DNA from: Perkinsus chesapeaki ATCC PRA-425
Taxonomy: Eukaryota; Protista; Perkinsozoa
Direction: 5' to 3'
Assembly (NCBI GenBank): GCA_013115145.1
Contig: JAAPAO010000022.1
Location: forward strand, 1-64,000
Length of the DNA: 64,000 nucleotides
In this document: positions 42,760 through 64,000 of the stretch, piece by piece
How the letters are laid out: each line of letters begins with the position of its first letter
Position numbering within the stretch: the stretch's first letter is position 1
Translations under genes and position numbers: made by a program
The notes under the pieces: generated by a model
What the model was told of the DNA's origin: nothing
The model's input: the letters and a program-made list of their open reading frames with translations, nothing else
Databases searched by the model: none

Positions 42760-45700
42760 CTATTGACCGCCTTGGTCCTGCCGGGGAGATGGTTGAAGCA
42801 AATGACTAGCTATGATGCTCGCTATAGCTCGACTAACTTGAGGATGAGCTGTACGAGCAGTGATTCGAACCTGCGCCATCCACTGAATAATCCACCAGTA
42901 TAACCAAATGCACTATTCCCACCGTGTTGGGGCTTTTCGACAGGTCCGTGTCTATCCTTAACATGCAGGCCACTGCAGCATTTCTAGCATTTGGCCCCGA
43001 CTGCCCAGGCTGTGGCGTCCTCGTCAATAGTGTACCTACATGCCACTATCTCATACCGCTCCTTCCTCTAATCATCATCACCTGCAGCCGCTATCGTGTG
43101 AACGCGACCACCCGCGCCGTTCGCCATCGCATCCGGAAGGGCAATTAAATGGAAGTTGAAGGCGTTGCTTACATACCTGATAAGAAATCGATCACCAGGG
43201 CGCGCGCTTTTGTCATCGCCCACCCTTCGTATTGAGTGTATGGGACCTTGGCTTGACTGGTGACCATCGCCTCTCGTCCGCCAGTTTGCATCTCCTGCCA
43301 AAACTGAAGGAACTGCTGGGCGGAAATCGCCGCTGGAGCAATGAACTTGGTCAATACACCTGAGCCAGTGAGTTGAAGTGCGCACTCGGAAGAATAAAAG
43401 ATACTCACATGGTAGTGTCATTGGGAGCTGTTTAGCGCCTTGGCCGTTAACATCAAATGTTACGAGGAATCTTGGTGGTTGCAGGAATGGGCGTAGGCAC
43501 TCCACTTGAATGTATTCGACCTAAATCTGCCCGCTCAGCGCCGAAAAGACGACGTAGAAATTCACCCAACCTTCCGGAAGGGCGCTCCTAGTGAGATAAC
43601 TCCGCCATGAAAATCAGAGCGTTTCTCCCACCGTAACCTGGCCATGGCCGATCGAAATCAGCAAAGTAGCAGAAGACGCTAATACTGCTGCGAGTGACGG
43701 ATTTATGCTACTTTAGCGATCTTAGAAAAAGAGGGAAATTTGAAAAGATGAGGCAAACGCGGAGGAGGAAAGTAAAATGTCTAACACAACGCTTCCAAGC
43801 GAGCAGGCGTGAGTGGCGCTAAACGGATCACATAAACCAACAACTAACATGAAGACGGTTAGATAATATAACACCTGCACTGCAGTCGCTATCTACTAGA
43901 GCGGAGAGCGTGATCTCCATCGACCTACCGCTTGTTGGCCAGGTTCCAACGTATTGGGCTGCAACGCTGTGGATCTGACTCTAAATCCACCAGTGGTATC
44001 TGGCGGCACCTGAGAGAAGGAGATGGATGATAGGCGGAGCGAAGTTGATATACCTGAGTTTTGATGTTGCTAATAGTGACATCTTCTCCCTTGTTGATAA
44101 ATTGAAGAGCTAGCCGACCAATACCATGACCGTATCTACCAGCATCTCATACCGACTTTTCCACAAATAAGGCCTACTCTGCCTTCATATTAATATGTAG
44201 GGAGTTAGACTGGAAGAAGCTGCCTTGATTCGACACGCATAGCCTTTTCCAAAGCACCCCTGGCGGTACCGGCCCTAAAGCAACATATACACCATTAAGG
44301 AATGCTGCATCGCTACGGCTGTCGTCCTCATCATCGTAATCACTTTCATCCTCAGATTCATCAGAACTCACGCTACCTTCACTAGGTGGAGCTGGACCCG
44401 CCAGACCGGCAACTACTGGCGCTGGTGACGAGCCCGGAACCGCGTTCTGAAAAAGTTGCATACTTCTAGCACGGGCAAATTGTATAGTGAATCGGAAGGC
44501 TCCAGAACAAATAGTTGAGACAAGAACCCTACATATGAAGATGAGCTGGTAGAAATGGTAATTCTCACAGTACTGGAATATACCTGTGTGCACGCCTATA
44601 GTGCTCGAAACCCCCCAAAAAACTGATCGATGTTTTCATCCACGAACAGCAGCAAGCGGCGTATGGCGGCACAAGTGAGAAAGGCCACCGAGAGACATTC
44701 CAACTCTAATAATACAGCTACTCCCCAGTAACAGAGCTACTCATGAAGCAACATCTGTTTCAGTGACCATTTATTACCAAATCCTTGCCAGGTTTATTAT
44801 TGGACAATAGATTCTCATCCTGTTTAACATCTCCTTGCTGGTACACTCCTCCTTCAGTAGCAGCCGCCTATCCACCAAATACTCCCCATTTCTACACCTT
44901 CGCTCCGCCTACTACCTCCTCCAATTGCTTCCTAGTAGTAGCTCTCGTCTTACCTTGCGTCTTAATCCTTTGCTTTAACGGATTGTTTTCTTGAGCCTGC
45001 TTTTAAATGTCATTAAACTAATACCACACTTTTCTCAAACTCACTTCAATAGGATATACAGGCATCATAGCTAGTGTAGTCTCGACCATAGCATCTCCAC
45101 CAATCGTAAACAGCCGACTCAGCTCGCATGCACCTACGAATCTTGAAATCTTACCAAATCTTACATTTCCTCAATGTCCTACGTTGCTGCAATCCACAGT
45201 CGAGCGAATCCTGATAGTCCTCGAATATTAATAGAACCTCATCCTTAAGGTCTTTATCGTCCGGATTAGCATTTAACAGTTTAGCGTAACACATCATCAT
45301 TATACACTTAGTTTCAGCGCTAACTCGATTGATGTGCTTTTGCAACAACTACCAAATAGGCAACTTAATAAGAAAAGTTGAGGAAAAGTTGGTATTACAT
45401 TCACTATTTCTAGAGGCGTTGTCTTGCCCGCATTCACCAAGAAGTGGCCGAATTCTCCCATTAGATACGCTGCAAGCTTTATGAGAGTCTCATGAGGGTA
45501 CGGGGACGACTGGCCTGAAAATCCAAAATTCATTACCGAATTTTCTCGGGAAATTTTATAGGAAGCCATAGAGGTATCCAAAATACAAAAAAGAACTAAA
45601 AACGTCCATTTCGCATCCGACGTATCCGAAGCCTTGATAGATAGAAGTGTTCGGTGAGATAACTTCGGAAAATGTTTTCATAATCTACACCACTTCAGTA

Positions 45701-48700
45701 GGGCCACCAGATTGAATTAATCCTATCCAACTAGGTTGAGTTATAATCCCCTTCTCCCCTCCAATGCAACACTACAAGCTTCCATTGCTTTCTCCGCTGC
45801 ATACTGCTGTACTATATCCAATGTACCATCATCCGCATCTTTATTATCAAAGCCAGTAACAACTTGAACCTTTAATAAAAGATACGCATTGTCGCACTAT
45901 AAAGATTCCTTTCCTACCACTCTAAACCACACATCTTCACTCACAGATTCTGGACTGTACTCCAACATTTTGAAAACGACATCGACATACCAAGTCGGAT
46001 CAGGAGCGTTCACCTCTGCCAAAATGGCTATCTTTAGTATCTGAATCAGTATCAGTAAACCAAGATCAATGGAAGAATCTCTCGTGCTTCCATAGTAGTA
46101 GTTTCACTTCCCTCACCGGCAGTGCGGCTGCCCATGAGGTTGATATACAATGAAAGCTTTGTTGGACTGTGAGTGTTAAGAGAATATTCTACTTTTAAAC
46201 CGCATTACAATCACCAAATAATATATAAATAATAAATAGCATAAATAATAATAATAATCGATAATACAATATTGTGTAACACAATAACGGCAAATAGTCA
46301 TCATACTCAACGTGCTCCTAATACAGCTTTTATCAATCCGAGAGAGAGCTACGTCGAAGGAGATATACTATAATCCATTTCCAACATAAGCCTCTTTTAG
46401 TGTACAAGTCCGTTGAATCCAATGCCTCCCTCCCCCCATCCTTACCAGTTCCTCATGTATCCCAGCAGCTGCGCTTGGCTCACTCTCCCGGAATTTATCG
46501 ATACTTGATGGCGCTGGACGGGGACCAGCTAAAGGACAACACACAGTTGAAACAGTTGAGCAACTACAAGTACTGATAAGATACCACCCATTGGTCGCAC
46601 TATTACTGGTAATAATTCAATATTACTTATCACACCAGCGGCGCATCATGGGCTACAATTTGGACGCATTGAAAGAATGGAATACCACACCCTCCAGCCT
46701 CCCCTCTCTTCGCGTTAGAAGAAATGTCGGAGATTTATATCAAAGCTACGCATCAACCTAAGGATTCTCGTAAAGGGTCAGATTATGGTCCCAAGTGGGA
46801 CTGCCAGCCAAGCAGCTATCCCCAAAGTGAGGAAGTGCAGCTCCGCTAGGTAGTGAGATAATACGTGATCTAAGCCAGGACCGCTTATCTTGAAGGATAA
46901 TGAATTCCGAGCCATGTCAAAGTTGCGCAGATCCGTTAGCCACTTCGCTGCTTTCCCAGTCTATTACATGTACTAGCCAGAGCCTCTAGGAGCTCATCCA
47001 CAATAACTTGCCAGTTGCTTGGGTTACATATAGCGTAGAGAAGATTCAATGCCTGTCGCTGAATGGAGGGGTCGCTTTCGTGCAGCTGTTTTACTATAAC
47101 GGTCTTATACCTGACCATCGACCCCTAGACCCTTGGTTCGAATCCCATAACCATCACTACTTATCAAAAAGATTAAGTTGATGTACCCAATCTAGATGAG
47201 GACCACTCCCTTTACTTGTCATCGAGCTGCTCGCTGCCGTAGCCATCCTCGCCATAGCGTCCATTGCAAGATATCGGATATTAGCCTCCTTAGAGGATAT
47301 AAACCCACCTAAGACACACCACTGCACCCCTAACCCTACATCCCCCCTCCGCAGTAGTACTACTACCAAGCAGTTGGACGCAGGTGCGGCGATTATCAGC
47401 GTTGCATTCGTCGCCGAGATGGATTATGAGATTAGTTGCCTCAAACAACACTCCATTCTCAGCATTGGAACGATTCACTCTTTCCGCGTCGGCCCTACTG
47501 GATCCGCGGTTCTTTTTAAGCGGTCCTAAAATCCAGGCCGTGGGGTTCGAACCCGGGATCTATACTGAACTACCCTTCTTTGAAGACGCCTTAGGGATGG
47601 ATTGATCCTGGATTTCCATTACAGCCTTGCCTAGTATCTAAGCTTCAAGCGTGCTCATCACATTATCGAAAAGACTCTCTGTACTCTTCCCAAAACTTCG
47701 TTAAGTCTGTATATGATGGCATCATCGAAGCACGTCATAACCGGGAAGAACTGTAGGCATCGAAGAAGCTTCGCCTGTAGAGAAATAAAATGCCTTCAGC
47801 GTGGATCGAACCCGGGGCCTTTCGATTACTACCTGTAGCCACGGTGCTGGTACTCTATAGTAAACATAATGGCTCGGACACTCCCCAGTGACCATCGCCG
47901 AAAGCGCCACGACAATTCCAGGTATAGCTGGAGTCCACTCTACCGGTGGAGTCGTTCCTACACGTGACCTCAAGTCGACCTATTTCGTATCTTTCAACCT
48001 TCTACCTGCTTCCAAGATGCCACCCAACAGACCCGCCGCCGCCGTCAGCATCCCCACATCCTTCTCGTTGCTAAGTATGTCATTTATCTTATGGGACCAT
48101 TCCTCGGCCGACATAAGATCTTCAGGACCTGTCTCCCGGTATCTTACGCACTATAAAGATTTTCAATATTACTATCAACTTCCCTGTAAAACCGCAACAG
48201 GCACATACAAGCCTTCCTTTGTACATACAAAGTAGCTCCAGTGTTCTTATCGAGAAGCCTAACAGCAGCAGCAAGCACTAAGCACCGTCAATATTAGACT
48301 CAACTCCCCTTGAAAAAGAGCTAATACGCTTTGGAATGCTAGTGGGCGAATATACAGCAGAAACCTCCATATTTTCCCCGTGTACTCCGCCCCGGACATT
48401 TGATATTCCCAACTCGCTTCTAGATGGTGCGGCATACAGGCGATACCCCTCCTACTACTACCTTGCAACATCCCTGTATAGGTTTTCAGCGAACTCGGAC
48501 CCACCAGTGTTCGCGATACAATTGAGCGCCAGTGCCTGGACATGCTCATTGTTGCTGGCAATATCAGCCTTGCAGGCATTCACTATCAACCGCAGGACCT
48601 GAACGAATTACAGATGTACTGGCCGCGCGGATAAGGCAGAAGGCTTTCATCCCATAGATCCCCGGGTCGAATCCCTCTTATTACATCATTATTATCCTGT

Positions 48701-49232
48701 AGTAGTAAGGAGCAAGCTATATAACCTGCATTCTTTTCACTGTATTTAGTAGAGCTGATCAAACACCATGATAAAACCTATTAAACTACGTATCCCATTT
48801 CACCTGCATAAATTAACAGCTTGTATGTGACCAAAATCTATATCATAACCCAGCATATAAGCATAGATCAACTTCCATACATACTTCTTTTCATCGTACC
48901 TGATAACAGTAATCTTTATTACGACTATATATCATAATCAAGCCTTCACAGCGATTTTTATTGTTTAATGCCGTGTTGTCCACCACCACCACCAACAACT
49001 ATATAGTGTACTCCCCCTCCCTATAGTACCCTTTAAGCCCTTTAGGACTGGCAAACTTAGTACGAATCTTAGCTAGTTCCTTTTCAACTCTTTGATTCTC
49101 CGCCTCCTTATTAGGGCAGTTCCTAATGTATTGTTATTATTTATATTATTAATGCCACTATCACCTTATATCCGATACAAATACAGTGAGGCCCTTCATG
49201 GACCCGCTGTTCCCTATAGGAAGCCCCGGCAT
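42760..49232 (-). CDS. AP2A: AP-2 complex subunit alpha (alpha-adaptin), many exons
   Basis: [124 protein letters not shown]-terminal [20 protein letters not shown]. Confidence 0.95.
47111..47160 (+). pseudogene. tRNA 3'-fragment, antisense within an AP2A intron
   Basis: Plus strand AGACC-CTTGG-TTCGAAT-CCCAT-AACCATC-A has variable loop/T-arm/acceptor spacing; the 50-nt GT-AG intron is on the minus strand. Confidence 0.6.
47526..47573 (-). pseudogene. tRNA-derived sequence forming an AP2A intron
   Basis: GTAGTTCAG...AGATC-CCGGG-TTCGAAC-CCCAC-GGCCTGG-A-TTTT-AG. Confidence 0.7.
47775..47832 (-). pseudogene. tRNA-Thr(AGT)-like 3' half forming an AP2A intron
   Basis: GT-AGT-AA-TCGAA-AGGCC-CCGGG-TTCGATC-CACGC-TGAAGGC-A-TTTT: exact canonical spacing from anticodon loop to discriminator. 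Confidence 0.8.
48616..48676 (+). pseudogene. Degenerate tRNA (TTC anticodon-like loop), antisense within AP2A intron 48599-48684
   Basis: TGGCCGCGCGGATAAGGC (D-arm-like), GG-CTTTCAT-CC anticodon loop, AGATC variable loop, CCGGGTCGAATCCC T-arm. Confidence 0.65.
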
Positions 49233-49682
49233 ATCTTAACGGTACAAAAAAACTACATAATATCTTAGCTCCATCCGGTGAAGATTCACGACAGCTTGAT
49301 CAGCAAATTGAGGATTAACCCGCCAAACAACAGATGAGGGAAGATGCCTTAACATGAATTCGGGCGCGCGCGCAAGATTTATAGCGGAGCGGAGCTGCGA
49401 TTTCCCTCTTCACTCGGGAAAATGACGTGTTCATTGATCGCGTGCTGCAAGCCTGGCTCGGCAAGTAGATCCGTATCGCATCGGTCATCAGCTTCAAATC
49501 ATCGGTTATCATCTAGAAGGATTACGTAAGAATCTGGAGTTGACCCTGAAGGATAAGACGAAGAAAAGATTTATTGAAAATGGCCTTTATTGTGAATAAT
49601 TACTTGGGACTTTTTGACACACTCAAATTCATCGTCATCTACATGGCCTTGCAGTGTTGTTCTGGAAGTTAGCCCGCTCCAA

Positions 49683-51200
49683 ATGGGGTCCGTCTATTCC
49701 TTCATCACTGGTGGGCCTCTAATAGCGGATATTGACTACACTGACACAACAACACCAACAACAACAACCAGCAGCAGCAACAACAGCAACAAAGATTCTA
49801 CCCCGAAAAACAACATCACTTTGCCAGCTGACTTCACAACGTGTAACACAATTGCCGTGATAGGGGGCGGTGCGATGGGATGTGCTGTCGCTTCATGGCT
49901 TGCTATATTGGGGAATACTGTAAGGATCCTGAAGCTGCTGGTTCTTACCCCCTTGTATATTAGGTATACTTGATAGAGTGCAGTACGCCACCCTCTGTTG
50001 TTGAAGAGAGGGTCAAGGCGAATCTACGACAAGCTTGGGGGATCTGTAGCGCGGTTTGGCCAGATCTTAACCTCACACGGGACGGCCGCCCCGGCACTAA
50101 AGATTCCTGTGAACCTGAAGCTGCCGCGATCGATGCCAGTTCCGATACTGAGGGTTCTGGCCGGAATATCGATGACATTTTTGGAACGCTCGAGGAGTGC
50201 AGCGGTAGAGTGCACTGGTGAGTATATGAAGATGAAGTATAACCTTTTCATGCTCGGTTTGACAGCTATAATGCGTCGAGTCTCGACAAAGTGGTAAAAG
50301 ACTGTAAAGTAGCCATCGAGGTGATTTCTGAAGATTTGAAAAAGAAGGCACAACTTTTTATGGAATTGAGGAAAGCCAGTAGTCTTATTATTCCATTCAA
50401 CCTCAATGGTATCTTTCCATCATCAACCTCAGATCCTAATATGTTATTGACTACCAATTCATTGTCACATTCTCCTTTGGATATATCGCGGAGTGCGGGC
50501 TTCCAGGAGGGTGATGTTATTGGCCTGCGATGGCTATGGCCCATTTGTTGGATACCTCTTGTTGAACTCACTAGTAAGCAAGATCACTTATAAGTAGTTT
50601 GTATTCATCATCATCCTCCTCCTCCTTTCTCAGCTCCTTGTATCGAAGCTCTGTCCTATAAGGCAAGCCTTGCATTTGTGAGATCCCAAGGTTTAATTGG
50701 CTACTCAACAATATCGTTACATCGCTGGCGTATGCCTATTCACGACACCGATGCATTATTCGACTTTTTCAAGTTTTCCGTGCAAAGAACAGCACGGTGG
50801 AAGCTGAAGCTTGGAGGTATCTTGCGCCCTTCTCACCGCTCGTCCAAGCGCCGCTTTTGCTGATGCTGCTCCTTCTTCTTCAGACATCCCAAACTCCTTT
50901 ATAGCTGCTACAGATTTGTGTGTGGCTTGTCTTTCGCAACCTCCGGAGATTATTAATGTTGGGGCATGTGCCCATCTGTGCTTGTGCGAGCAATGCGCAA
51001 TAGAACTATGGCGAAGGTACACCCCTATTAATCCATCTCCTAAGCTCACACCCGCCATCCCTTCTATTAGGTCATGCCCACGTATCTGTAATATAGGGCA
51101 CTCTGTTGGACCATCCTGCCCGCTATGCCGTAGGCCTCTTCAACCCGGTAAACTGCTGCTCGACGCTGAGCACTATAGGCTTGTTGCTCCTAACTCATGA
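49683..51200 (+). CDS. Myristoylation-motif protein: 3-hydroxyacyl-CoA dehydrogenase NAD-binding fold fused to a C-terminal RING finger
   Basis: MGSVYS start; IAVIGGGAMGCAVASWLAILG (GxGxxG), VKDCKVAIEVISEDLKKKAQLF, LLTTNSLS, GLRWLWP; then CVACLSQPPEIINVGACAHLCLCEQCA...CPLCR. Confidence 0.7.
49920..49963 (+). pseudogene. Degenerate tRNA-Tyr-like 3' half forming an intron
   Basis: GTAAGGATCCTGAAGCTGCTGGTTCTTACCCC aligns loosely with eukaryotic tRNA-Tyr GTAGATCCTTAGGTCGCTGGTTCGAATCC; T-loop degraded. Confidence 0.4.
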
Positions 51201-51388
51201 GCACATCTTGTACCTTTCGTTATCATTGGCCTCAATGGCGGCTAATCCTTTTATCGTCTACTCCTTTTCGGGAGAAATGTCCCATTTTCTGTGCGAATCT
51301 TTTCAAGTGTTCAGCACCACTTTCAAGCCCACAATAGTCTTTACGTTCCCAGCCGGCTTCTCAGTGCTCTGAGTCTTGTGTTGATCAT

Positions 51389-53113
51389 ATGCGGGGCGCC
51401 AAAATGCCGATGAGCATTTCCACAATGCTGAATGAACTCGAGCCGCTCACCACCGGCAACAGTACTAGCAGCAGTCGCTCCAAGGGACAACAGTCATACC
51501 TACATGAGAGTATCTTTGAGGTTGATTCCCGGCCACCCCAGCGACACGAGAGCTCGACTTTTAACTGGAGCTCATGCGGTGGCCTCCTACTCATCACCAC
51601 ATCATTTTGGCTGCTTGCTTGGAATGAGACTGTTAACTCCCCTCTAGAAGCCTCACTGGTCTACGCCTTCCATCATGCTCGGAATGCCTCTTGTGATTTT
51701 GTGGATGAGGCCAACACCGGTGACCTAGTCTGGCTTAGCTGTCCTGTCATATCGATGCCGATGCTTGCCGAGCTCGCTCCCTCAGATATACAATCAGCTC
51801 TGAGCCAGGCCGGTCTGGAGGCTCGTGGTACCCAGCTGGAGTGGACGGTAGAGATGCTGCAGTGGACTGAAGAGGAAGTGTGCCGAGGATCAACAAGGAG
51901 GAGCGAATGCCTTTATACCTACTCCAAGGAGTTCACACACGTCGACATCGACCCAACTCACTTTTATTGTGCGACCAAGATACGCACCGGTTGCTCCACT
52001 CTCGCCCCATCTGAGCGTCCTCCAGTGCGCCTGGCGCAACTGGGCCGCCCCGAGACCCTTCATGGGATTGTGAAGGCTCCTGAGGACTCCGTGGTGATCG
52101 GTAACCCGAGGAACGGTTATGTGCTAAACTCCGCTTTGGCCGACCAGATCTCTGGTAAAGCTCAAGTTCAGCTGATCGATCGGGAGGGAGCAGCTGCGCT
52201 TCTCGGTGCCGATCGTGACCTCTATGTCGACTTCACACTCAACGAGTCATTTGCCCAGACATATGTGGCTTCGCCGAGGATTGGTGATCTCCGTTTGAGA
52301 GTGTCGGTATCATCGGCAGACTTCGTATCTTTGGTTGCCAAGCAAGAGCTCTCTGGCCACCTGGGTCCCTATTCCATACCCGGCCTCAGACGCTCTCTAC
52401 CTGTCGAATGGCTTATCGATGGCCGCCACGCAGATCTCCACTCTTTGTTGAAGCACCATAGTAAAGCGGACTTTGCCTGGTTCTGGCGCTTCATGGGCAT
52501 TTTGTTCCTCTGGCTGGGTGCTGCCCTTCTACTCTCCCCCCTTGGGGAGACAGAGCCCGCATGTATGGCCGTCCTGTGCGTGGCCTGTTTTGCCGGTGCT
52601 GTCCTATCAGCCCTCCTTGCCGCTGTTGGCATTGGTCTCTTCGCCTCTTTCCCTTTTGAACTTTTAGTAGCTACTCTCGGCGTCGTCGGTGCCGGTATCT
52701 CCTGGCGCGCTTATAAGGCCAGTTGGCTCGACCGTGCCCACTACTACCAATACTACTACGGCGGTCTCTATGATGATGCCTCCTCCCCTGTGGCCGGTGA
52801 AATGCCTCTCATCAGAGCAGCCGCCTCGGTGACCCAGGAGGACCCGTACTGGTTTGAGCGTCGCTTGGATAACAGATGTATCGAATCGAGCGATGATGAA
52901 GATGACGACGAATATCAAGAGACAGGTGAGACCATGGCATCTCTAACATCGCCGAATTTTTTGCAAAAAGGAATCAACCAAGGATTGCCCATTTTGGGAG
53001 TTACGCTTAGGTGTAATCAGTCCAAGACTAGTTTTGTTTCAGATGGTCTGTCCAAAGATACTAACAGTCGACCTTCGCGGTATCTTCCGCGCATCGACCC
53101 TCCCAGTGAGTAA
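51389..53113 (+). CDS. TMEM43: TMEM43/LUMA (DUF1625) family membrane protein
   Basis: Intronless 574 aa ORF: N-terminal TM ending LAWNE, DEANTGDLVWLSCPV, VEMLQWTE, YTYSKEF...DIDPTHF, PRIGDLRLRV, VSLVAKQ, C-terminal TM cluster. Confidence 0.8.
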   Translation: MRGAKMPMSISTMLNELEPLTTGNSTSSSRSKGQQSYLHESIFEVDSRPPQRHESSTFNWSSCGGLLLITTSFWLLAWNETVNSPLEASLVYAFHHARNASCDFVDEANTGDLVWLSCPVISMPMLAELAPSDIQSALSQAGLEARGTQLEWTVEMLQWTEEEVCRGSTRRSECLYTYSKEFTHVDIDPTHFYCATKIRTGCSTLAPSERPPVRLAQLGRPETLHGIVKAPEDSVVIGNPRNGYVLNSALADQISGKAQVQLIDREGAAALLGADRDLYVDFTLNESFAQTYVASPRIGDLRLRVSVSSADFVSLVAKQELSGHLGPYSIPGLRRSLPVEWLIDGRHADLHSLLKHHSKADFAWFWRFMGILFLWLGAALLLSPLGETEPACMAVLCVACFAGAVLSALLAAVGIGLFASFPFELLVATLGVVGAGISWRAYKASWLDRAHYYQYYYGGLYDDASSPVAGEMPLIRAAASVTQEDPYWFERRLDNRCIESSDDEDDDEYQETGETMASLTSPNFLQKGINQGLPILGVTLRCNQSKTSFVSDGLSKDTNSRPSRYLPRIDPPSE

Positions 53114-53214
53114 TTTCTGGTAACATAATTTAGCCATGTAGAAGCCTTTCCACGGTACACTTGGCCATTGAGTTCCTTCAATACAAGAAACCCCCTCCGA
53201 AAGGATTACTGTTA

Positions 53215-54611
53215 ATGCTATCCACCACCGCATTCAGTCACACCATTGCTCGAAGGCTATTCGCCTCAGCAACATCAGGGGCGGCGGCGACGGCCATGGC
53301 CCCTCGTATAGTAGCACTCGACGCGGCTACGTTGAAGTTGCCCAGTGACGCTTGGAGGAGCCTCAGCGCCCTCGGTGACCTTTCTCTCTATGAGGACACG
53401 ACCACACCGGAACAGGCTATCGACAGAGCGAAGGTGAGCACATGCGTGCAACTTCTTCATACCACACTCCTCTCAAATCAGGATGCCGATATACTACTCA
53501 TCAACAAGGTTCCGCTGGGTCCCGATGTCCTCGGCCATCTTCCATCGCTGAAGATGATCAGTGTCATGGCAACAGGTCTCGTGGTCCACCCCGGAATATC
53601 GGTCTTACTGTGCTTTTGCTGCTGCCCTGCTAGGTTACGATAACATCGACATCCGTTCCTTGAAGTCCGGGCAGATAGTCTCCAACGTGCCAGATTACAG
53701 CACTAACTCGACGGCCCAGCAGACCGTGGCTCTCATATTAGAAATATGCAACAGTGTCGGTATGCATAATGCTGCAGTTCACGCTGGCGAGTGGTCCAAG
53801 GAGGGCCTCTTCTGGTACGTGAGGCCCTTCTTCTCCATATATTATATCACGGTCAGGTTCCGCAAGCACGAGATGCTCGAACTTGGCCCGGAGGTTACTA
53901 TCGGTATAGTGGGCCTGGGTACCATTGGCACAAGGTAGCTGCTGTCTCCCAGCGCCGCCGTTCATTCGAAGCTATCTGTGCTGCTGTTAGAGTCTACGAG
54001 CTGCTGCGTCCCTTCGGATGCCAGTTCCTGGCGTGGTCACCGGACACTAGGAAGGAGCTTCCTCAACTAGTTTATACCGATGATGTTGGTGAACTATTCC
54101 AGAGATCCAGTAAGAGCTATTTCAGAACAGGGCGTATCTTGCTGTGCATGCGTGCATAATATCAGACCTGGTTACACTTCACTGCAAGCTAACTCAACAG
54201 AACTACGGTTTCGTAAATGGTCCCCTCCTGCACCGAATGCAGCCTGGCTCAATCCTAGTCAACGCGGCAAGAGGCGCGCTAGTCAACGAACAAGACCTAG
54301 CCGATGCCCTCAAGTAACAGTACCACCAATAACGTCACTATTGTTTGTCAGTTGCGGTCACCTTGCAGCTGCAGCAGTTGATGTGGTTTCTCATGAGCCT
54401 ATAAATGACACTAACCCATTGCTTCAAGCCAAGAACTGCATTATAACCCCTCACATGGCGTGGTAGGTATATCCCCACCGCCGCTACCGTTCTAGAGGTA
54501 TTCTTGCTTAGGACCGCCCCTGAGGCTCGTCAACGCTGCCTGGCCATCGCCACCAGCAACGTAGAGGCCTTCCTGAGCGGCAATCCATCAAACGTTGTTG
54601 CCTCCGGTTGA
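53215..54611 (+). CDS. hprA: D-2-hydroxyacid dehydrogenase (glycerate dehydrogenase/hydroxypyruvate reductase-like) with mitochondrial-type presequence
   Basis: DADILLINKV, ISVMATGYDNIDI, VSNVPDYSTNSTAQ, TIGIVGLGTIG, AAAVDVVSHEP, KNCIITPHMAW; N-terminus MLSTTAFSHTIARRLFAS is R/S/A-rich and acid-free. Confidence 0.88.
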
Positions 54612-54745
54612 GGGGAACATTTCAAGTAAAATGTCGTGCAGACATCTGTGACCCTTACTAACTTTTTGTGTCTTATTTCTCATCTTTTCATCGAATTGTG
54701 TTGTCAATCTCCTCAAAGCTCCTCTCGTAGCTAATACTACTCACA

Positions 54746-56804
54746 ATGCCAGGGCAGCAGGCCACCGCCTCGACAGCAGCGCTGTTCCTGGCCTTTACCC
54801 TTATCGAACACATCCTCGGTAACTCTCTGAAGGGCTCCCTCAGTCAGGCTGTAAGCGTGTGGCGACCGGAGGGTAGCGCAGCGTTCTGTTGGCAGGCGAT
54901 GGGCAAAGAAACGCCCTCCGCAGCTGATGCTAGTCAAGGAACTTTTCATGAAACAGAGATGGCCCGTCTTATAGATATAGACAACACTCGTCCTATGAAG
55001 GTAGGTCGCTGGTTCGATCCCGGCATACAACATCCTTTTAGTTCCTGACAACTGAGAAGCTCCGTGATGGGTATAAGGGTCACACCCTATCAGAAGTCTC
55101 GCCAGGGTAGGTCACCTCCATACAGCAATAGTAACTTGCTCGACCAGGTCTCCGCCTACCAACCGTTTCGGTGACATGATAGTCCCCGACACTCTCCTAG
55201 AGGGCGCTAATCCAGCGTGGGAGGTCTGGCCACACCCTCCTGGACAGTCATCTGAGATACTGTACGACAGCAGTCACGTATTAAAATTAAAGTATTTATT
55301 TTCGATAGATATGAGTTTGATCACTCCGCCAAAGCGTGTGTTCGCTCTGTTATTATGGAAGCGATAAAGCATGTATCTGTTGCGGTAAGGAAGTCCCTGG
55401 TTCGATCCCCGGCTGAGGCATCTCCCCATCAGGCACCATGCATCACCTTTATTGATGCCGAACATCATGACCAACCTGTCGGAGCTCACACCCTTAAGAT
55501 CAAGGGTGAAGATTCTGGCTGTTACGCCTCCCTGGGATATTCCAACACCCACGAGAATGTGTTAAATCTCGGTAAGCGGACAGCAGCAGCATCCAGGCGC
55601 TGTTGCTGTGAATGATGCTTGGACAGGCCGTGGGTGCATGAATGTTGGCACAGCTATACACCTATTAATGCACGTTCTTGGTGTAGCTCATGAGAATCAG
55701 CGTCCAGATAGCGAAGCTTATATGGAGGTGAGTTCCCATTGTGGTGGTCGGCGGCGGCGGCCACTTGAACGAGACATCCCTGATTAGACCATTCCCAGCC
55801 ATATTGAAAATGGGGTCCTTCAAAACGAGGAAGCTATGAAGGTCAACTTCCAGTAAGAAGGCAGAGAAATGCGATCATCGACTGTTGGTCCTTAATTCAG
55901 AATTTTCCAAGGAACAGGAACAGAGTGGGAGAGGGCAGTTCGGGGTAAGTATGCGGCATGACCGCGCGCCGAGAAATGTCTCTGTAGGCATAGCTTACGA
56001 CGTCGCCAGCGTGACGCATGGAGGACCCTGCTACTATTCGGCTTCTCGCTTTGAGAGAGATGGCTGCTCGAAAACACTCGTCCCTCGGGCGGTAAGCTGT
56101 GAACGTCTATCTGAGTGAGGTGGTGTATTTCAGGACCTTGGTAGGACCGCATCAGAAGTAATGGGCAATAGAGCCTTCTTAACTGCGCATGATATTGCAT
56201 TACTTAGAATAATGTAAAAACCAGAGTTGCGGTTCAATTGATGATAAGCAGCATTCCCATCAGGTATGGATGTGGTGGACACTATCGCAGTGGAGAAGCA
56301 TACGTCGCTGCCGCCTCTAACACAGTGTATGATATATCTGGCAAAGCTCTCTTAGAGCCGGTGTCGGTAGGTGCTTTCGAGCAGCTTCTCAGTACATAAT
56401 TGCGCTCCTCTGTCAGGTATTACAGCAATGCTTATTTACTGACCAGGAAAGCTTCGCTGACTGGGGAGCTGAGGGAGACCTCGAGCCATTGCAAAGGTCG
56501 ACGGTCCCAGTAGAACAACACACCGAGACCACTGCGGCCCCCTCCAATGGCAACCTCCGAACAGGATACGAGACTATAATGATGGGCGTTCTTGTGGTCG
56601 TTGTCATCAGCCTGGTAAGAAAAAGTCGGTGTATCATACATTGATTTTAATTCACAGGTGGTATTTGCTGCCTATGTTACGAAGGATCGATGGTTCCCAA
56701 AAGTTGAGAAGACCAAGGAGAGCATAAAACGCATCACTCATCGATCACGGGAAGAACAGGATGAACCGCTAGTCTCCGAGGAGGACGATCGTTACGATGA
56801 ATAA
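54746..56804 (+). CDS. Astacin (M12A)-like protein, predicted catalytically inactive, probable type I membrane protein
   Basis: N-terminal hydrophobic leader; EAIKHVSVA-APCITF, GCYASLG, GRGCMNVGTAIHLLMHVLGVAHENQRPD, YDVASVTH; hydrophobic stretch and acidic tail near the 3' end. Confidence 0.75.
55001..55041 (+). pseudogene. tRNA-Tyr-like 3' fragment forming an intron
   Basis: GT-AGGTC-GCTGG-TTCGATC-CCGGC-ATACAAC-A-TCCTTTT-AG with a full 5-bp T stem. Confidence 0.8.
55385..55432 (+). pseudogene. tRNA-Phe-like 3' fragment forming an intron
   Basis: GTAAGG-AAGTC-CCTGG-TTCGATC-CCCGG-CTGAGGC-A; GTCCCTGGTTCGATCCC matches eukaryotic tRNA-Phe. Confidence 0.75.
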
Positions 56805-57499
56805 GCATGAAATGGCCTCATGGCATCTGATGTTACCAAACATTGCATGTGTTGATTTATACAGTATGACACCAACATGAATTATGCGCTACGTGAGAAG
56901 TACGAGCTGCTTATGAGCTAGGAGGCCCTGAGCTAAGGACGCCTCTAGACTAGCCGGCTTAACTCTTTTATTTTACGCTCGATGGCTCGAGACCCGGATG
57001 CGTGGTAGAAGCGCTGGTAGAAGCTCGATGGACCCCCCGCCGTGTCCATGACGAGGTTCGAATAAAAGGTCTGCTGCAGAGCGCCGACACAAATTAGCAA
57101 CCAGTCGAGGTTAATGGTGATAGGATGGCAGCAGTGCCTTTATTGGGTTCGTACTGTTACCATTTTGGTCCATGCGAGACAACGCGTATGTTGATAGTAC
57201 TACAAGTGGATGTTTTCACTGAAGGAAAATGTGTCCAATGGACATCCGATATTTTTTGCACAAAAGTCTGATTGACGGGAGAGTTGTTTTTCCCACTACG
57301 GATCGTACGTGACAAAAGTACCGAATAGTGCCGCACCCGATAGATATATTAAGGACGTCGAAGCGGAGGTCATCGCTTCTTGCGCGGATAAGACTAACCC
57401 AAATCAGATGATGAAGTGAGAGAAGATCTTTATTAATGTAATGTCGATGATTATACGTGTACCGTGCGTCATGTTACAATACTATAATCATCATATACG

Positions 57500-60400
57500 A
57501 CAAGTTAGTTAACGGTTGGATGTTGAGGTAGGAATGATAACCTGACGACGACGACACAATAGCAATAAAGATCAGTGATGCTTCATTTACCTCCAGTAAC
57601 TGCAGTAGTTCATTGCTCTTCATGGCATGCATATGTTAGACTCCTCATCGAGGACGCTACCATCCACTTCGGCATCCGGAGAGCAATCCACAAACACATT
57701 CTCTATCGAGAATAATCAAACGATAGCAACGCGGGCCGCTACTCACCAGCTTTAATGTTTTGGTTCATTTTTTGCTTGTATGTGTAAATCTAAGGCATCA
57801 CCATCATTAGTAGTCAATCCCTCTTGGCTCACCTCTTCATCCAAAAGCTCATCAAATTTCCAGTTGCCAGTGCTCCCTCGTCGTCCTGTTTTATCATTAA
57901 TTCGGATGTAATCCCTAATAACGATTTCCAGTCAAACGAGCACACTCTGGGCCAGGGTCTCTGGCACAGCTGATGAAGGCAATGAAGGTTCAAAAATATA
58001 ATGTACAGTGTAGTTATCATCCATCAAATGACTAGTTGGTTTTTCCCCAAGCGACTTCCAAAAACTCTATCTTTGAAATTGCCATCCTGAGATTTGATAT
58101 CGAAATTTTTCTATTGAACTCTCTGACGGATATGCATCATGTCTCAGATGAGCCATGCCAGGGCTACTTGAATGATTGTGTGTTGGGAGGATCCAGCTGT
58201 CCCGAGGCCACGATGTCACCGAACACCCTGACATCAAAGACATAAGGACAGTTGCGGCAAATGTGTTACTGTCGGATATCACAACTTGGTATCCTGTCAC
58301 CAAAGATACTGTCGGGGTCGGTACTGGATTGAGCAAGAACCATAGACTGCCATTTCATAGACCACGCTGGAATGTGCTGACAAGATACTTTGCGCACTGT
58401 GAAGATTTCCCTATCCCTTACTTTATGCCTTGCATCCTCTGAATGCTCATCAGTGTCTTCATCATATTCCGATATAGGATACCTGAGCATCGCCTTAACC
58501 ATGAATGCCAAAGGAGGAGCTATCAACTACTGGTCATCAAACCGTGGAGGGGAGTCTAAGCTGCGCAATCGTTTGACCTGTGATAGAATGCAATGAGTGG
58601 CGGCCACCAGAAGCACCTTGCCGCCCGTGATTGTTATCCGTGCAGTATTCTTGCTGACTGTTGTTGATAGTAGCACACGGCGGCCCGATCCGACATCTTC
58701 GTGGGAGGCTGAGACACAGGAGACTACTGACGCTATTTACACAAACCTAGAGTTTATTCATTCCCGCGTGGGGATGATTCCACTCGTTATGAAACCCCTC
58801 TAAAAAATATTACAACCTATGATATCAGGCACTGTCATTACTACTACTTAGACCATCCAGAAATCACACTGGCAGCAAAATCGAAGGAGTTATAGAATGA
58901 TATGTTGACCTATTATTATAAGTTAATTATTTTTTCTAAAGAAGACTTCTTTGCGGTGTGGTCGAGAGGTAACCAGCTTACGTTTATCACAACCAACATC
59001 GCTGTGGTGGCCGCTCCCTGCTGGAGGTATTGGGGTTGAGAAAACCTTGGACACTTCATACTCACTCGGTAGGCTCTCTGTAGAGATATTTAATTAACAA
59101 TGTGGACTGGGCTTACCAACTGCACGCTTAACGTCAAGATCCATTCCGGAGCCTTTTTGACCAGCAATAGGAGAAACTGAACAGGTGAAGATATACCACC
59201 ATTGCGAGGGGGCTCGATTGAGCATTGGAGCAAAACAGGGTAAGAATACTGTACAGAAATAGAGTAAGAATACTGTATAGAAATAGAGTAAGAATACTGT
59301 ACAGAAATAGAGTAAGAATACTGTATAGAAATAGAGTAAGAATACTGTACAGAAATAGGGTAAGAATACTGTACAGAAATAGAGTAAGAATACTGTACGG
59401 TCTCACCGTTATCTTCATTTCCGTCCATCATCTCAGCAATACTCTTCCTTCCTCTGGCCCACACTGGTGTCGGTGGATCCTCTACAGATGGGCTAGCATC
59501 TGGAAAGTAACCTGATAAGCATACCATATCGACACTTCGTTTTCAACCATCTTGACAGAGTGAGTCCCAACGGAGACCAGCGACAACCATAGTGACCTCT
59601 CTTTCAAACAATTGTGAGGGAGTGGAGGGCGGGACGGAATCAATGAGACACTCAGACTCTCTGCAGTAACGAGCCTGAAACTCTTAGACCTCCAGTATGT
59701 TAGAGCTATTATCCCGTATAATCTATACATTTCACAATAGGCACGTACAAAAACAGACTCCTATTCCCAATGTGGCATGTGCCCAACTGACCTCGGTTCA
59801 TCTGCCGCTTGACCGATGCTGACATGGATGCCGTTGTGTTGGTACGAGTCATGTGATGAGGGGCCGCTGACAACTTCTTAGCCTTAACAACAACCAATAG
59901 ACTGCAGCCGCTATACCCAACTAACCTACTTCAAATTTGCTGGCCAAGTCCTTTACTCTGGATCTCTGTGTATCAGCCCCACCAATGGTCATCACAGCAG
60001 CAGCCGAGCACTGATAATAAAGACTATGCTATTGAAGTGGCAAGAAGGAGGACTTACCGATGATTGGTCATTAAACACTGAATGATTGCCGATAGACCTA
60101 ATAAATACGAAGCACTCCGCGTCTTTGCGCTGTCACCCTTACAGTAGTTTGTCCCCGGGTGATCTTGAAATTGGCCTGGACGCTGTAGCATTACCCATAG
60201 CCGATGGCCCCCCAGTAGCATGCCCTCTGGAGAGATCTTCCTCGCTCTCATCGTTCATGCTCGAACAGCAGAGAGAGTCACCGGGCACAGAGGGAGCTGG
60301 AAAAGAAGCTTCATGAGGGAGAATAGCCAAGTTGAGATGTCACGTGGTGGATTGAGCAACGGTGCTGTCATAACTGTTGGCTTTGTCGGTACTGCCACAC

Positions 60401-61100
60401 CACGGCTCTCCAACCATGACGGCACTTGATGGACTATATCATCCAGACTGAGGTGAGAGACACTCATGACTGGTCGAAAGTGCCGGCAAAACAAACTTGA
60501 TATTGAATATGTAATATACATTGTAGAGGATGTATTACAGTCAGAGCTGAAATTGTCGATATTTAATTCTCCACAGAAGGATAATAGCACTAATACTGCT
60601 ACACCGCGCTAGCATCCTTGATGATATTTCGGACATGGCCGTGTGAATGGTCCGAACGAAATCGATCTTGGCATGCTCCTCGAGTTTTACCGCCTCTTTA
60701 TAACTCACCAGCCATCGGCCTCTTTCATAGAGGACTTCAACTCGGACTGTAGTGCAGCTATACCAGCATCACCAGCGTCAGCTAGACAACCGAACAGAGC
60801 TGCTAGATCAACCTTCCTAACTGACTCCCGCCTGAGCTGACTGTTAAATGACATTTAATGTATGAGCCGACAAAGGCCTAATAACAGCACAAGTAAGAAT
60901 CTTCGGCGATGCCGCAATATGAAGTTTCATGACGAACTTTGGACGCCACGATGAAGCTTCCAACGCGTCAGTTACAAAAATGCCCCTCAACCTGTTGGAA
61001 GTCTGGCGGACTTCATCACCCGACTCTGCGAAGAGCCTCGGACTTCCGCGAAAATTGATCATGAATATTCTTCTTTCACCAACCAATGCAAGCGAGCAAA
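57500..61100 (-). CDS. Hypothetical multi-exon gene(s)
   Basis: Multiple same-strand ORF fragments (58266-58526, 59090-59527, 60139-60330, 60844-61086); no family recognised. Confidence 0.3.
59240..59398. repeat. 24-bp minisatellite, about 6.6 copies (GTAAGAATACTGTAYAGAAATAGR)
   Basis: Directly visible tandem units; in frame on the minus strand as (QYSYSISV/I)n. Confidence 0.95.
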
Positions 61101-61299
61101 TTTCCGGAACTCTTCAATGAGAATTATGATGCTGTTGCAGCATCCACGCGCCTCGTAATCATCAGGTAACATTAACAACAAGTTCAAACTCTCGCAGAAA
61201 CCGGCTCTGCTAGAACACAATGATAAAAATGTAAGTTGCCATGGCGTCGTGTACTGCTATTCCTCTGGCAGCAAGAGGAGCAGCTCTGTACGGTATCGA

Positions 61300-64000
61300 T
61301 TGCGGTACACGGAAACTTGCGGAGTGACCACCTGTACAGTGAAATGTCCATCACTTTATGCTATATGCTCTACCATCCGCGGCATCAAGTCTGCTATTGA
61401 TGTGGTGTGGCGGCCAATAGTGAGGAGGAGGAAGTGGTGGTAGCCGACTGTGGAAAAGACGAGCTCGAATGCTTCACTGGGTGGATCGTCATGTCTCTCG
61501 GTCATCAAGAAGGAGTATCGATCCTGACGGGGCAACAAAGATTCGAACCTCCGACCTTACCAACTAGAGACGGCCGGCTCTCCCTCGCTACCATTCTTGC
61601 ATGATCCTGCCAGTCTATGCCCTCAGTCTTATCCACAATGCATTCTGTATTAACTGGATGTACAAATCTAGACACCCCACTCATCGCACTAAAGACGTCA
61701 ACATGAATAATGCATCGGTCATCCCCGAGCTGCTGCCCCCCACGAAGGGACCTCACACTCCCCCCCGACCGAAGTGAACCTGCGGCCTGGTCAGAATGAG
61801 CATATCGATACCCTTTACCGTTGAGATCATTTCCTTCCAAAACCGTCGGTAGAAATGATGACGAATTAAACCGCCCCAAAATCAACGGATAGGCCACACT
61901 GCTGCTTTCGGAGTATATCTACACGAGGTCTTCATTTCGTGGCGCGCGAAGTTTACTAACTAATTTACCGCTGTACGTGGCCTTTCTCGTGCCAGTACTG
62001 CTGCAAGCTCTTGCATAGCATGCCCGCTAGGATAGTTGTAGACAGATGCCGCCACTCGGACACAAAACAGGCATGCCTGAGAACATGAGGCAGCAGCTTG
62101 CCGGCCAAAGACTTCAAGACACTACTCCAAACTGGATAACACTATTGCTATTAGCCGCATCAATCGGGAATGTGGTTCAGCGGTAGGACTCCATGGTAGA
62201 TTCGAACCCACGACCATTGGCATGACAGACCAACACCTTATCCCCTCTCACTGTAGCAACTGTTATTCCAATTAATCCCGTCCTCAACACACATGTCCTC
62301 AACAATCGGTTCCTCGCCATAATTACCATGGCCTTCGATCCCACTGACCTGTACGCTTCCGGGCCATACCGCCGCCCGAACGGTGATAAATACGCCAGCA
62401 CTCTGACAACCAATGGTAAATTAGCCAAACAAACACAGAAATTTCAGCTCTATCAGATTTATTTTCCCGCACGCCACGAAATGATTGGCTCGATCGAGCT
62501 ATTGCTACTACCTATGAGCTCCTCGTGCAGCTATCAGTGTTAATACGAGTAGACTGGGGAAGATGAATCTGAGCTCCTTGTGGGGTAAAAATGACATCAT
62601 TGTTACTGGTGCTATATACCATACCAATAACAATGGTATTAGAGGTACCTGATCATCACATTAATTGGCGGAAATGTGGTATAAATTCTCCTATTCAACA
62701 CTGAACGCATGGAAGGCCGAAAACGGCGTTCATTAAAGAACCTTGCCGCAGTAGTAGCAACTAATAATTTTTACCATCATGGTATGTTCCAAGTTCCACG
62801 TTCTGATCCGTGCAATTGAAAAGTTACGCAAAAACCGGATCTGCGAACCGGCCTAGTTCGCACTGTATGAAAGTGTTCCAAGCTCATCGGACTCGACCGC
62901 CACCCACTTCTTTTTTTGGAGCGTAACGAAATTATAGAGTTTATTAAAAAGCAGAAATAATCGAAGATATGTCCCGGGTGGCTTGCCAGTACGTATAATA
63001 ACTTACCTTATGCTCTGGCATGCCTGTAGGAGGTGGTAATGCAGCGAACGGTAATAACAATATCAATGGTCCAAGACCCTGATGATCGAAGATCAACTAC
63101 TCCCTGGGATTCCGACGCCACCACCTACTCGTATAGTGGCATTGGTGAGGTACCAATGCCACGGTTGAACCCCCCACAAGTAGGATTTATTCTCGACAGC
63201 ATTGAACCAGAATACCCAGCCTTCTGGCCACATAAGGCCACGCTGCCACATCTACATAGAATGCCATCAGACAACCAACACTTTAAATGGTCCTTCCCTA
63301 CCAAGGAGTCCAGAGGTATGGACAATACAATACCGTAGACTACCGCCTTCAGCCCACTCAGTACCACTACTATCACCGACGTTAGAAACTAAGACTACAG
63401 CGTCACGGTTACACTGCCGAGTTTGTACCGTCTGAGCCTTCCAATGGAGCACCAAATCACGAACGACTATCTCAAGGCCTAGAACGGCTCCAACTGCCAG
63501 GAGATCGCAGCGGAACACTAGAGCTGTGAAGACCTTACAGCTGGATGGGTACATGATGGAGACAATTGGCTTACCATAACCTGCATGGCGGAGAGCCGCT
63601 TGCCTTCGAGGTAGAGCGACAAGGCGAATGAACCTAACAGATGGGTTTAGGTGGAAATCGAAGATTGTTGCTACTTAAAATGAGACCGAATGAATTAGGC
63701 AGCAGTCTTGTATAGTAAAATGATAAATGGAAGCATCCTGTGATACAGAGGGTTATTAGTACCTGCCGATGGGGATAGTAGTATCTGACGATACACTGTA
63801 CTCCCCGTACTGGAAGGGCAGGTTTGGTCTCATCTGGACAGGCATTACGTATTCGCCTTAACGCTGCTGCAGCTGCTACCGCCATAACCCCTCGAACTAC
63901 GTACCTTATGCACGACGCCAGTAGGTGTTCAGTAATGTCCCGGTGTAATATTCACTCGAATGACGTACACTTCCATTCGGCACGGGCAAATGAGGCGAGG
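61300..64000 (-). CDS. ALG12: Dol-P-Man alpha-1,6-mannosyltransferase (GT22), 5' end outside window
   Basis: ALVFRCDLL, IPLDSL-MWQRGLMWPEGWVFWFNAVENKSYLWGVQPWHWY, MSFLPHKELRFIFP, SVYNYPSGHAM, IHVDVFSAMSGVSRF...DKTE are ALG12 motifs in order. Confidence 0.9.
61524..61591 (-). pseudogene. Near-complete degenerate tRNA (lacking the first 6 nt) forming an ALG12 intron
   Basis: GTAGCGAGGGAGAGC (D-arm-like), CCGGC...GTTGG stem, AGGTC-GGAGG-TTCGAAT-CTTTG-TTGCCCC-G-TCAG. Confidence 0.7.
62186..62251 (-). pseudogene. Degenerate tRNA with GTC (Asp) anticodon at the 5' end of ALG12 intron 62077-62251
   Basis: GTGAGAGGGGATAAGG, anticodon arm TTGGT-CTGTCAT-GCCAA (5 bp), TGGTC-GTGGG-TTCGAAT-CTACC. Confidence 0.75.

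Follow-up and report, generated by a model that had tools for sequence, protein, structure and literature searches.

Ancient tRNA-gene relics within short introns of Perkinsus, and their B box as a candidate protein-binding site

Consensus B boxes that lie outside RNA polymerase III (Pol III) genes and are occupied by TFIIIC in the absence of Pol III or TFIIIB are known as extra-TFIIIC (ETC) sites. In yeast and human these sites have a B box only, and the COC sites of S. pombe offer a further comparison. The ETC sites of C. elegans lie on CeRep3 repeats derived from tRNA pseudogenes and are over-represented in introns; these B-box-bearing, tRNA-like remnants are not Pol III genes, and an architectural or insulator role has been proposed for them (PMC6950938). 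Short interspersed nuclear elements (SINEs) derived from tRNA, and MIR/Alu elements, have a tRNA-related origin, occur in introns and carry a B box that can recruit TFIIIC to genes of RNA polymerase II (Pol II) (PMC7014570, PMC3744447). Introners form whole introns at many unrelated sites, and those derived from transposons carry splice signals (PMC11282704). Within the genus Perkinsus, the tRNA genes of P. marinus are very numerous and a focus of mobile DNA, the Dada DNA transposons (PMC3706591). Here we describe eight introns in a 64-kb stretch of Perkinsus chesapeaki DNA (the window; contig C1304 of a 41.7-Mb assembly) that each carry the 3' end of a tRNA gene, hereafter the module.

These introns differ from each of the systems above. 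Compared with ETC sites, the Perkinsus relic accounts for the greater part of an intron of 37-110 nt, to which it often contributes splice signals. It keeps only the 3' third of a tRNA gene and its terminator at fixed spacing. Coding genes contain it by the thousand, and individual sites have stayed conserved between species whose silent sites are saturated; that TFIIIC occupies them is a prediction from sequence. A SINE consists of a tRNA-related 5' head, in which both the A box and the B box lie, followed by a body and a tail; SINE copies resemble one another within families and are flanked by target-site duplications. The Perkinsus modules (35-75 nt), in contrast, lack the 5' half and have in common only a generic tRNA 3' profile. 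Introners are near-identical recent gains, often with terminal inverted repeats and target-site duplications, whereas the modules are ancient, dissimilar and orthologous (PMC11282704). Dada elements are 4.7-11 kb long and insert at the A box (TAGCTC) of live tRNA genes (PMC3706591). We considered and rejected them as a source of tRNA halves, since A-box targeting leaves dispersed intronic 3' thirds unexplained. In full-text literature searches we found neither introns built from tRNA nor B boxes of this kind within introns described for Perkinsus or elsewhere.

tRNA-gene modules in eight short introns

An initial annotation of this DNA had proposed nine introns built from tRNA sequence, located in genes for AP-2 alpha adaptin (AP2A), a HAD-RING protein, an astacin-like protein (AST) and an ALG12-type protein. 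They are as follows, with relics classed as sense or antisense relative to the host gene.

AP2A_i1, 47111-47160 (-): 50-nt GT-AG intron with an antisense tRNA 3'-end relic; B box GGTTCGAATCC at 47135-47145 (+)
AP2A_i2, 47526-47573 (-): 48-nt intron with a sense relic; B box at 47543-47553 (-); frame restored
AP2A_i3, 47775-47832 (-): 58-nt intron with a sense relic; B box GGTTCGATCCA at 47802-47812 (-)
AP2A_i4, 48599-48684 (-): 86-nt intron with an antisense relic of a nearly whole tRNA; frame restored
HAD-RING intron 1, 49920-49963 (+): 44-nt intron; GT..AG joint seen in two RNA runs; one open joined frame
AST_i1, 55001-55041 (+): 41-nt intron with a sense relic, a complete tRNA 3' third; B box at 55011-55021; frame restored
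AST_i2, 55385-55432 (+): 48-nt intron with a sense relic; B box at 55399-55409; frame restored
ALG12_a, 61524-61592 (-): intron with a sense relic; B box GGTTCGAATCT at 61539-61549 (-); ends in CCCC-G-TCAG
ALG12_b, ~62142-62251 (-): intron of ~110 nt, acceptor uncertain, with a sense relic; B box GGTTCGAATCT at 62198-62208 (-)

The annotation anticipated an excess of B boxes over shuffled sequence, and the counts agree. The motif GGTTCGAWYC occurs 10 times in the window, compared with 0.33 expected from dinucleotide shuffles, and the exact 11-letter B box GGTTCGANNCC occurs five times (0.13 expected). Genome-wide, there are 1821 matches to GGTTCGAWYCC and 61 to a reversed control, so that enrichment is ~30-fold in the window and the whole genome alike. 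The A57 variant GGTTCAAWYCC is found 393 times (control, 63). No intact tRNA was found in the window by ARAGORN, and RF00005 (Rfam) had no match there even at E<=10; real tRNAs elsewhere in the genome score 55-75 bits. As at ETC sites, a consensus B box (GGTTCGANNCC) lies outside any Pol III gene, within introns that contain no tRNA.

A sequence model (A1/R1) was built solely from 56 non-tRNA B-box sites on other contigs, and the window was searched with filters off. The R1 model recovered eight of the nine introns (four in AP2A, two in astacin and two in ALG12), with no further convincing site in that region. The strongest matches were AST_i2 (E=1e-6, 24.8 bits), AST_i1 (1.3e-5), AP2A_i2 (3.5e-5, 20.1 bits, - strand) and AP2A_i3 (3.4e-4), followed by the weaker ALG12_b (0.031), AP2A_i1 (0.039), ALG12_a (0.046) and AP2A_i4 (0.17). 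The original observation is confirmed for these eight. HAD-RING intron 1 is real as an intron, but its tRNA likeness is not supported: R1 gave no match at E<=10, the intron has only GGTTCTTACC, and a B box is not conserved in P. olseni.

We note B-box-like sequence elsewhere in the window. At 42861-42871 (-), GGTTCGAATCA lies within a conserved C-terminal coding exon of AP2A, where R1 also matches. As a candidate module it is probably a chance occurrence, as neither P. olseni nor P. marinus has conserved it and its final CC is missing. Outside the loci compared between species, the site at 33293-33303 (-) has GGTTCGATCCA and a CTGG/CCAG hairpin around a 6-nt loop (R1 E=0.5), and may be a further decayed module.

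The best-kept modules, read in tRNA sense, consist of a variable loop (AGGTC), a 5-nt stem strand, TTCGAnn, a second 5-nt strand and 7 nt. Next come A73 and a T-run in AP2A_i2, AP2A_i3 and AST_i1, A73 alone in AP2A_i1 and AST_i2, and neither in the ALG12 modules. The canonical tRNA spacing noted in the initial annotation holds, with exactly 10 nt between the B box and position 73 and an A at the latter in 15/15 orthologous sequences. AST_i1 reads GTAGGTC-GCTGG-TTCGATC-CCGGC-ATACAAC-A-TCCTTTTAG, with a full 5-bp T stem, while AP2A_i3 has a variable loop and T arm followed by TGAAGGC-A-TTTT, and AST_i2 has CTGAGGC-A-TCTCC...CAG after its B box. Parts of the 5' half are traceable only in AP2A_i2, AP2A_i4 and ALG12_b, as D-arm or anticodon-arm remnants. 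In AP2A_i2, GTAGTTCAGTATAGA (D-arm/A-box-like) is fused directly to the T arm, which is followed by GGCCTGG-A-TTTT-AG. AP2A_i4 has D-arm-like GGCCGCGCGGATAAGGC, an anticodon-arm remnant and a decaying B box, GGGTCGAATCC, at 48664-48674 (+). The anticodon-arm remnant of ALG12_b is TTGGT-CTGTCAT-GCCAA, in which GTC is Asp-like.

In the profile of the 56 non-tRNA genomic copies, information is confined to positions -10 to +25, counted from the start of the B box, with none upstream. This defines the unit as the terminal third of a tRNA gene together with the terminator. Within the profile, the variable-loop G and C are each present in 77% of copies, C72 in 55%, A73 in 64% and T-run positions in 64-77%, at a fixed offset. 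No 5' tRNA head with A and B boxes, as found in SINEs, appears in it. None of the modules has a CCA end, and gene 3' trailers with T-runs are present instead, which identifies the source as tRNA genes and not mature tRNA. The modules derive from tRNA genes. The idea that these introns are built from tRNA sequence thus survives as a tRNA-gene origin, consistent with the trailers and with the 5'-arm remnants in three introns; an origin from tRNA cDNA, also raised in the initial annotation, is unlikely in view of the missing CCA and the gene trailer.

Isotypes were assigned in the initial annotation, but acceptor strands of the modules differ between species, so these labels are not verifiable. 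In our own comparison with the genome's tRNAs, no module exceeded 0.65 identity outside the B box, too low to be meaningful. The genome also contains dense tRNA-gene arrays. Contig C720 (152-2128) has 11 GGTTCAAWYCC B boxes in 2 kb at ~150-310 nt spacing, and contigs C2943 and C2831 have many tRNA-Arg(TCT) copies. These arrays fit the very high tRNA gene numbers of P. marinus (PMC3706591).

Antiquity, constraint and orientation of the modules

Six modules (four in AP2A, two in astacin) are present in the same introns of the window and of the syntenic loci in P. olseni (L060) and P. marinus (L061), and every B box found in those two loci corresponds to a window module. Both ALG12 introns are also present in P. 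olseni. In the flanking genes, identity at fourfold degenerate sites is down to 36-40%, in essence saturation. The initial annotation held that tRNA fragments are being captured now and expected a sister-species comparison to reveal recent gain. Orthology of six of the eight modules across saturated divergence argues against both, as does the absence of young copies among 64 modules. Introners, in comparison, show recent near-identical gains with presence/absence differences.

The modules are not one repeat family, as had been suggested. Among the 64, mean pairwise identity outside the B box was 0.341, equal to the column-shuffle null, and the maximum (0.615) lay within the null maximum; there is no set of mutually similar copies of the kind that defines a SINE. 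The only similar pair is a local duplication on contig C48 (L101:1501 and L101:2776), with identical module copies and identical flanks 1,275 nt apart.

Both the motif and its spacing are constrained. In an ungapped three-way comparison, GGTTCGA was 100% identical and CC 87-100% identical, whereas the two N positions were ~50% identical and most other intron positions 27-60%. The nine specified positions of the B box are thus 87-100% identical, compared with 36-40% at fourfold sites. At 40% neutral identity, the probability of keeping at least eight of the nine is 0.004 per site, and at least eight are kept in 5/8 P. olseni and 6/6 P. marinus counterparts. From -9 to +25, all 15 sequences are free of indels and have A73 at +21, whereas the same introns vary in length elsewhere (AST_i1, for example, is 41, 59 and 48 nt in the three species).

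Individual introns illustrate this pattern. AP2A_i1 has an orthologous intron in both relatives, AP2A_i2 and AST_i2 have orthologous modules in both, and the orthologs of AP2A_i3 begin with GTAAGGTC and GTGAGATC, right at the variable loop. In AST_i1, GTAGGTCnCnGGTTCGATCCCGGCAT is nearly invariant across the three species. The AP2A_i4 ortholog has an intact GGTTCGAACCC in P. marinus and is a degraded copy in P. olseni. In P. olseni, the motif of ALG12_a has mutated to GGTTCTATCC and the intron is kept; ALG12_b has lost its T loop there (GTGGG|CCCAC) but keeps the intron and the donor GTGAGAGGGG. Since both ALG12 introns persist after loss of the B box, the motif is not needed for splicing.

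Modules occur in both orientations, as the initial annotation stated, with six sense and two antisense in the window and 16 sense and seven antisense among confident calls in a genomic sample. Strand was called with a regional codon-score classifier that, on annotated genes, was correct in 81% of cases overall and 95% at a margin of at least 10; it replaced local scoring of GT..AG pairs around B boxes, which was unable to tell the coding strand. Intact antisense B boxes account for ~30% of ~1,800 sites, i.e. hundreds, compared with ~60 control matches. Given this excess and the absence of young copies, antisense copies must also be maintained. What is conserved in the antisense module of AP2A_i1 is an asymmetric DNA motif, GGTTCGA..CC (9/9 in three species), and not one common to the two RNA strands.

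The 5-nt T stems of the initial annotation are mostly not complementary. A structural T-arm scan of the window gave six matches (two expected), with three full T arms, which indicates that the signal is the primary motif and not a hairpin. Across 55 distinct genomic copies there was no T-stem covariation beyond the shuffle level, with 70.2% of cells paired compared with 68.6% after shuffling (118/500 shuffles as high). Three variable stem pairs were unpaired in 23-30 of the 55 copies, which is not the pattern of a functional tRNA, and stem changes between species were not compensatory. Together, the stem, orientation and conservation data favour a double-strand DNA site.

Splicing evidence and gene setting

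Each of the eight introns is 37-110 nt long, with GT-AG ends, and its removal restores the frame. The initial annotation's claim to this effect was borne out by exactly one open joined frame in seven of the eight, as well as in the HAD-RING intron. The joined frames read ...NLFDK|YKTVIVKQ at AP2A_i1 and ...PAPWLQ|AKLLRCLQ at AP2A_i3, and the AP2A junction peptides are adaptin-like. For ALG12_a, the first guessed donor gave no open frame. Donors placed by hand from open reading frames and the P. olseni alignment, GTAGCG at 61592 (69 nt, site conserved in P. olseni) or GTTGGT at 61564 (41 nt), are both in phase.

RNA evidence came from two small public runs with spliced contigs covering 48.4-51.2 kb. 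These validated six HAD-RING introns and the AP2A intron at 48755-48803, all module-free, plus AP2A_i4. At AP2A_i4, a spliced contig (~10% diverged) skips 91 nt but has 5 letters in between, so that the net loss of 86 nt equals the predicted intron length. The proposed check of junctions by RNA therefore succeeded for AP2A_i4 and the HAD-RING intron. The basis for the other seven module introns is the reading frame together with collinear conserved exon blocks in both relatives. GT-AG ends, frame restoration and, through AP2A_i4, spliced RNA are the marks of U2-type spliceosomal introns. At 48466-48900, contigs from run X1 differ by ~10% at AP2A exon positions, mainly third codon positions, whereas other contigs over the same region match the window exactly, which points to a second haplotype, strain or close species in the sample. 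The RNA contigs are apparently cut at 49746-49792, where the first HAD-RING exon has a run of ACA/CAA trinucleotides coding for a stretch rich in Thr, Ser and Asn.

From conserved exon blocks we estimate ~75-80 introns in 42.8-62.7 kb, so that the eight with modules are ~1 in 10. These counts are rough, as our own splice-aware gene finders (codon log-odds, with or without an ortholog bonus) missed the six RNA-validated HAD-RING introns and were dropped.

Genes collinear across the P. olseni and P. marinus loci are AP-2 alpha adaptin (-), TMEM43 (+), 2-hydroxyacid dehydrogenase (+) and astacin (+). The TMEM43-like protein of the window is 58-62% identical to its two counterparts. A Pyr_redox/3HCDH gene (+), with a RING finger in the window copy, was called in P. 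olseni only, and an INCENP/ALG12-type (Glyco_transf_22) gene (-) is present in the P. olseni locus. Window exons directly match the domains Adaptin_N (an exon flanking AP2A_i1), Astacin (an exon near AST_i1) and zf-C3HC4. A 24-nt tandem repeat, AAATAGAGTAAGAATACTGTACAG, with 6.9 copies and 94% match, lies at 59233-59398 on the - strand, in the INCENP/ALG12-side gene region.

Candidate roles of the retained B box

We favour, as the probable explanation, that these are ancient tRNA-gene relics forming most of very short introns, with the B box kept as a protein site on DNA and TFIIIC as the likeliest partner. The B box probably docks a protein on DNA; we infer this binding, the identity of TFIIIC as binder and any effect (insulation, chromosome organisation or modulation of Pol II) from sequence patterns. 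The surviving unit would be tRNA positions ~44-73 plus the Pol III terminator, sequence 5' of the variable loop having decayed or been deleted. It would comprise the variable loop, the B box, a 10-nt spacer free in sequence and fixed in length, C72-A73 and the T-run. The same unit may double as an intron scaffold. In sense copies the donor would often lie in the variable region (GTAGGT or GTAAGGTC) or in tRNA-derived sequence further 5', and the terminator T-run, as a pyrimidine tract, followed by AG would form the 3' splice region. In antisense copies the donor would come from the complement of the trailer (GTAAGA-like). Purifying selection on the B box itself would act at the level of duplex DNA, whichever way the gene is transcribed, and would involve no RNA pairing. 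Its reader would most likely be TFIIIC without Pol III, making these putative extra-TFIIIC-type sites inside Pol II genes.

To our knowledge, TFIIIC is the only reader of the B-box motif. Footprints of the tauB part of TFIIIC on tRNA genes fit a B box and a terminator at fixed distance, and the genome encodes a homologue of the TFIIIC subunit Tau95 (contig C3278, 2559-2660). A crude six-frame genome search gave no match to PF12657, a result that is uninformative given the short exons of an intron-dense genome. In the initial annotation, intragenic TFIIIC sites were a secondary idea. They appear to be the reading that the evidence favours, so that the original interpretation is partly supported: tRNA-gene origin yes, ongoing capture no, and TFIIIC-type sites favoured.

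Several points weigh against the TFIIIC reading. Selection is not absolute: the B boxes of ALG12_a and ALG12_b are broken or lost in P. olseni, and that of AP2A_i4 is decaying in both the window and P. olseni, although intact in P. marinus. AP2A_i4 is the sole module intron with RNA support in the window. Orientation calls depend on a classifier whose accuracy is only 81-95%, and, as the core TTCGAA is palindromic, a reader acting on RNA in both orientations retains some plausibility. The same six-frame search had no match to PF04182, the B-block of the B-box-binding subunit, which is likewise uninformative with short exons.

The strongest competing account concerns origin and is compatible with TFIIIC binding. 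It is possible, although short of probable, that the modules descend from an ancient burst of an introner derived from tRNA genes (a 'tRNA introner'). Copies of tRNA genes, or of their 3' parts, would have entered coding sequence and been spliceable at once, with donor and pyrimidine tract provided by the tRNA sequence and terminator and an AG close by. Intron boundaries speak for it. The donor of AST_i1, GTAGGTCG, lies in the variable region and is identical to positions 42-49 of the genome's own tRNA-Ile(TAT) genes (one tRNA-Ile variant has GTAAGTCG), and the T-run of this intron stands ahead of its AG. The 5' splice site of AP2A_i1, GTAGTG, is the complement of the sequence directly after discriminator A73. 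The median distance from the trailer start to the end of the first AG is 9 nt in sense copies and 16 nt in antisense copies. Antisense copies have a cluster of AC (the complement of GT) at +21 to +28, and their GTAAGA-like donors thus come from the complement of the T-rich trailer. One intron end therefore coincides with the 3' end of the tRNA gene in both orientations. tRNA sequence plausibly supplies splice signals, as the initial annotation had proposed for the donor GT.

The sharp onset of information at -10 and the modest sense excess (16:7 in the genomic sample, 6:2 in the window) also agree with a burst of introners. However, neither family structure nor young copies were found, and no target-site duplications were seen. 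The boundary coincidence fits intron creation by tRNA-gene insertion and also the trimming of older, pre-existing introns to a selected core. A GT peak at -25 from the B box (10/56 sites) is only suggestive. Among modules classified as sense in the genomic sample (L063-L102), GT stands at -25, the start of the anticodon stem, in 9/32, which hints at a second preferred donor position inside tRNA sequence but is only suggestive after multiple testing.

A role at the RNA level is unlikely. On this account the T-loop/B-box would be read in pre-mRNA or in the excised intron by a protein, such as a splicing enhancer or a tRNA-modifying or processing enzyme, or would be a source of small RNAs resembling tRNA fragments. 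Sense copies are somewhat commoner, the UUCGAA core is the same on both strands, and the module sits between the splice sites of minimal introns in which every nucleotide could matter. However, T-stem pairing is at shuffle level, there is no 5' acceptor strand for a minihelix, and the P. olseni introns that lost their B box must still splice. The asymmetric motif conserved in AP2A_i1 and intact antisense B boxes too numerous for chance point the same way. The release of tRNA-fragment RNAs, suggested in the initial annotation, is disfavoured, as stem pairing is not kept and antisense copies are kept too.

It is very unlikely that the modules are functionless relics in which the B box decays slowly, as a mutational cold spot or through biased gene conversion with tRNA genes. 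Some modules do decay, but the two N positions vary freely while the nine specified positions do not, and a cold spot or conversion tract would have included both N positions; moreover, the spacer is scrambled in sequence and fixed in length. Capture of assorted tRNA cDNA or gene fragments at breaks, whether recent or still under way, with the inserts tolerated through splicing, would account for the diverse flanks and both orientations but is scarcely credible, given modules orthologous in three species with saturated silent sites, no copy pair beyond the null except one local duplication, and gene trailers in place of CCA ends.

For the reading of the modules as relics kept as a protein site, we tentatively sketch a fuller history, which as a whole is somewhat doubtful. 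In the ancestor of the genus, 3' ends of tRNA genes may have been inserted into coding genes as ready-spliceable introns, with a donor from the variable region and a pyrimidine tract from the Pol III terminator, of which thousands may have been kept as a bipartite TFIIIC dock (B box, 10 nt, A73/T-run). If true, this would trace a considerable fraction of the introns in one eukaryotic lineage (~1 in 10 here, a rough figure) to a concrete source that can be dated, and would show a Pol III gene to be pre-adapted to become a Pol II intron. With ~1,800 perfect B boxes in 42 Mb, the prediction is that Perkinsus has the densest known set of intragenic TFIIIC-type sites. A Pol III factor would then be coupled to Pol II transcription, splicing or chromosome folding on a scale undescribed in any eukaryote. 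Perkinsus is a transfectable parasite, with CRISPR available for P. marinus (PMC8062965), and branches basally to the dinoflagellates, a lineage well known for its unusual chromatin. The role of Pol III-free TFIIIC sites, a long-standing question, would become directly testable in this organism.

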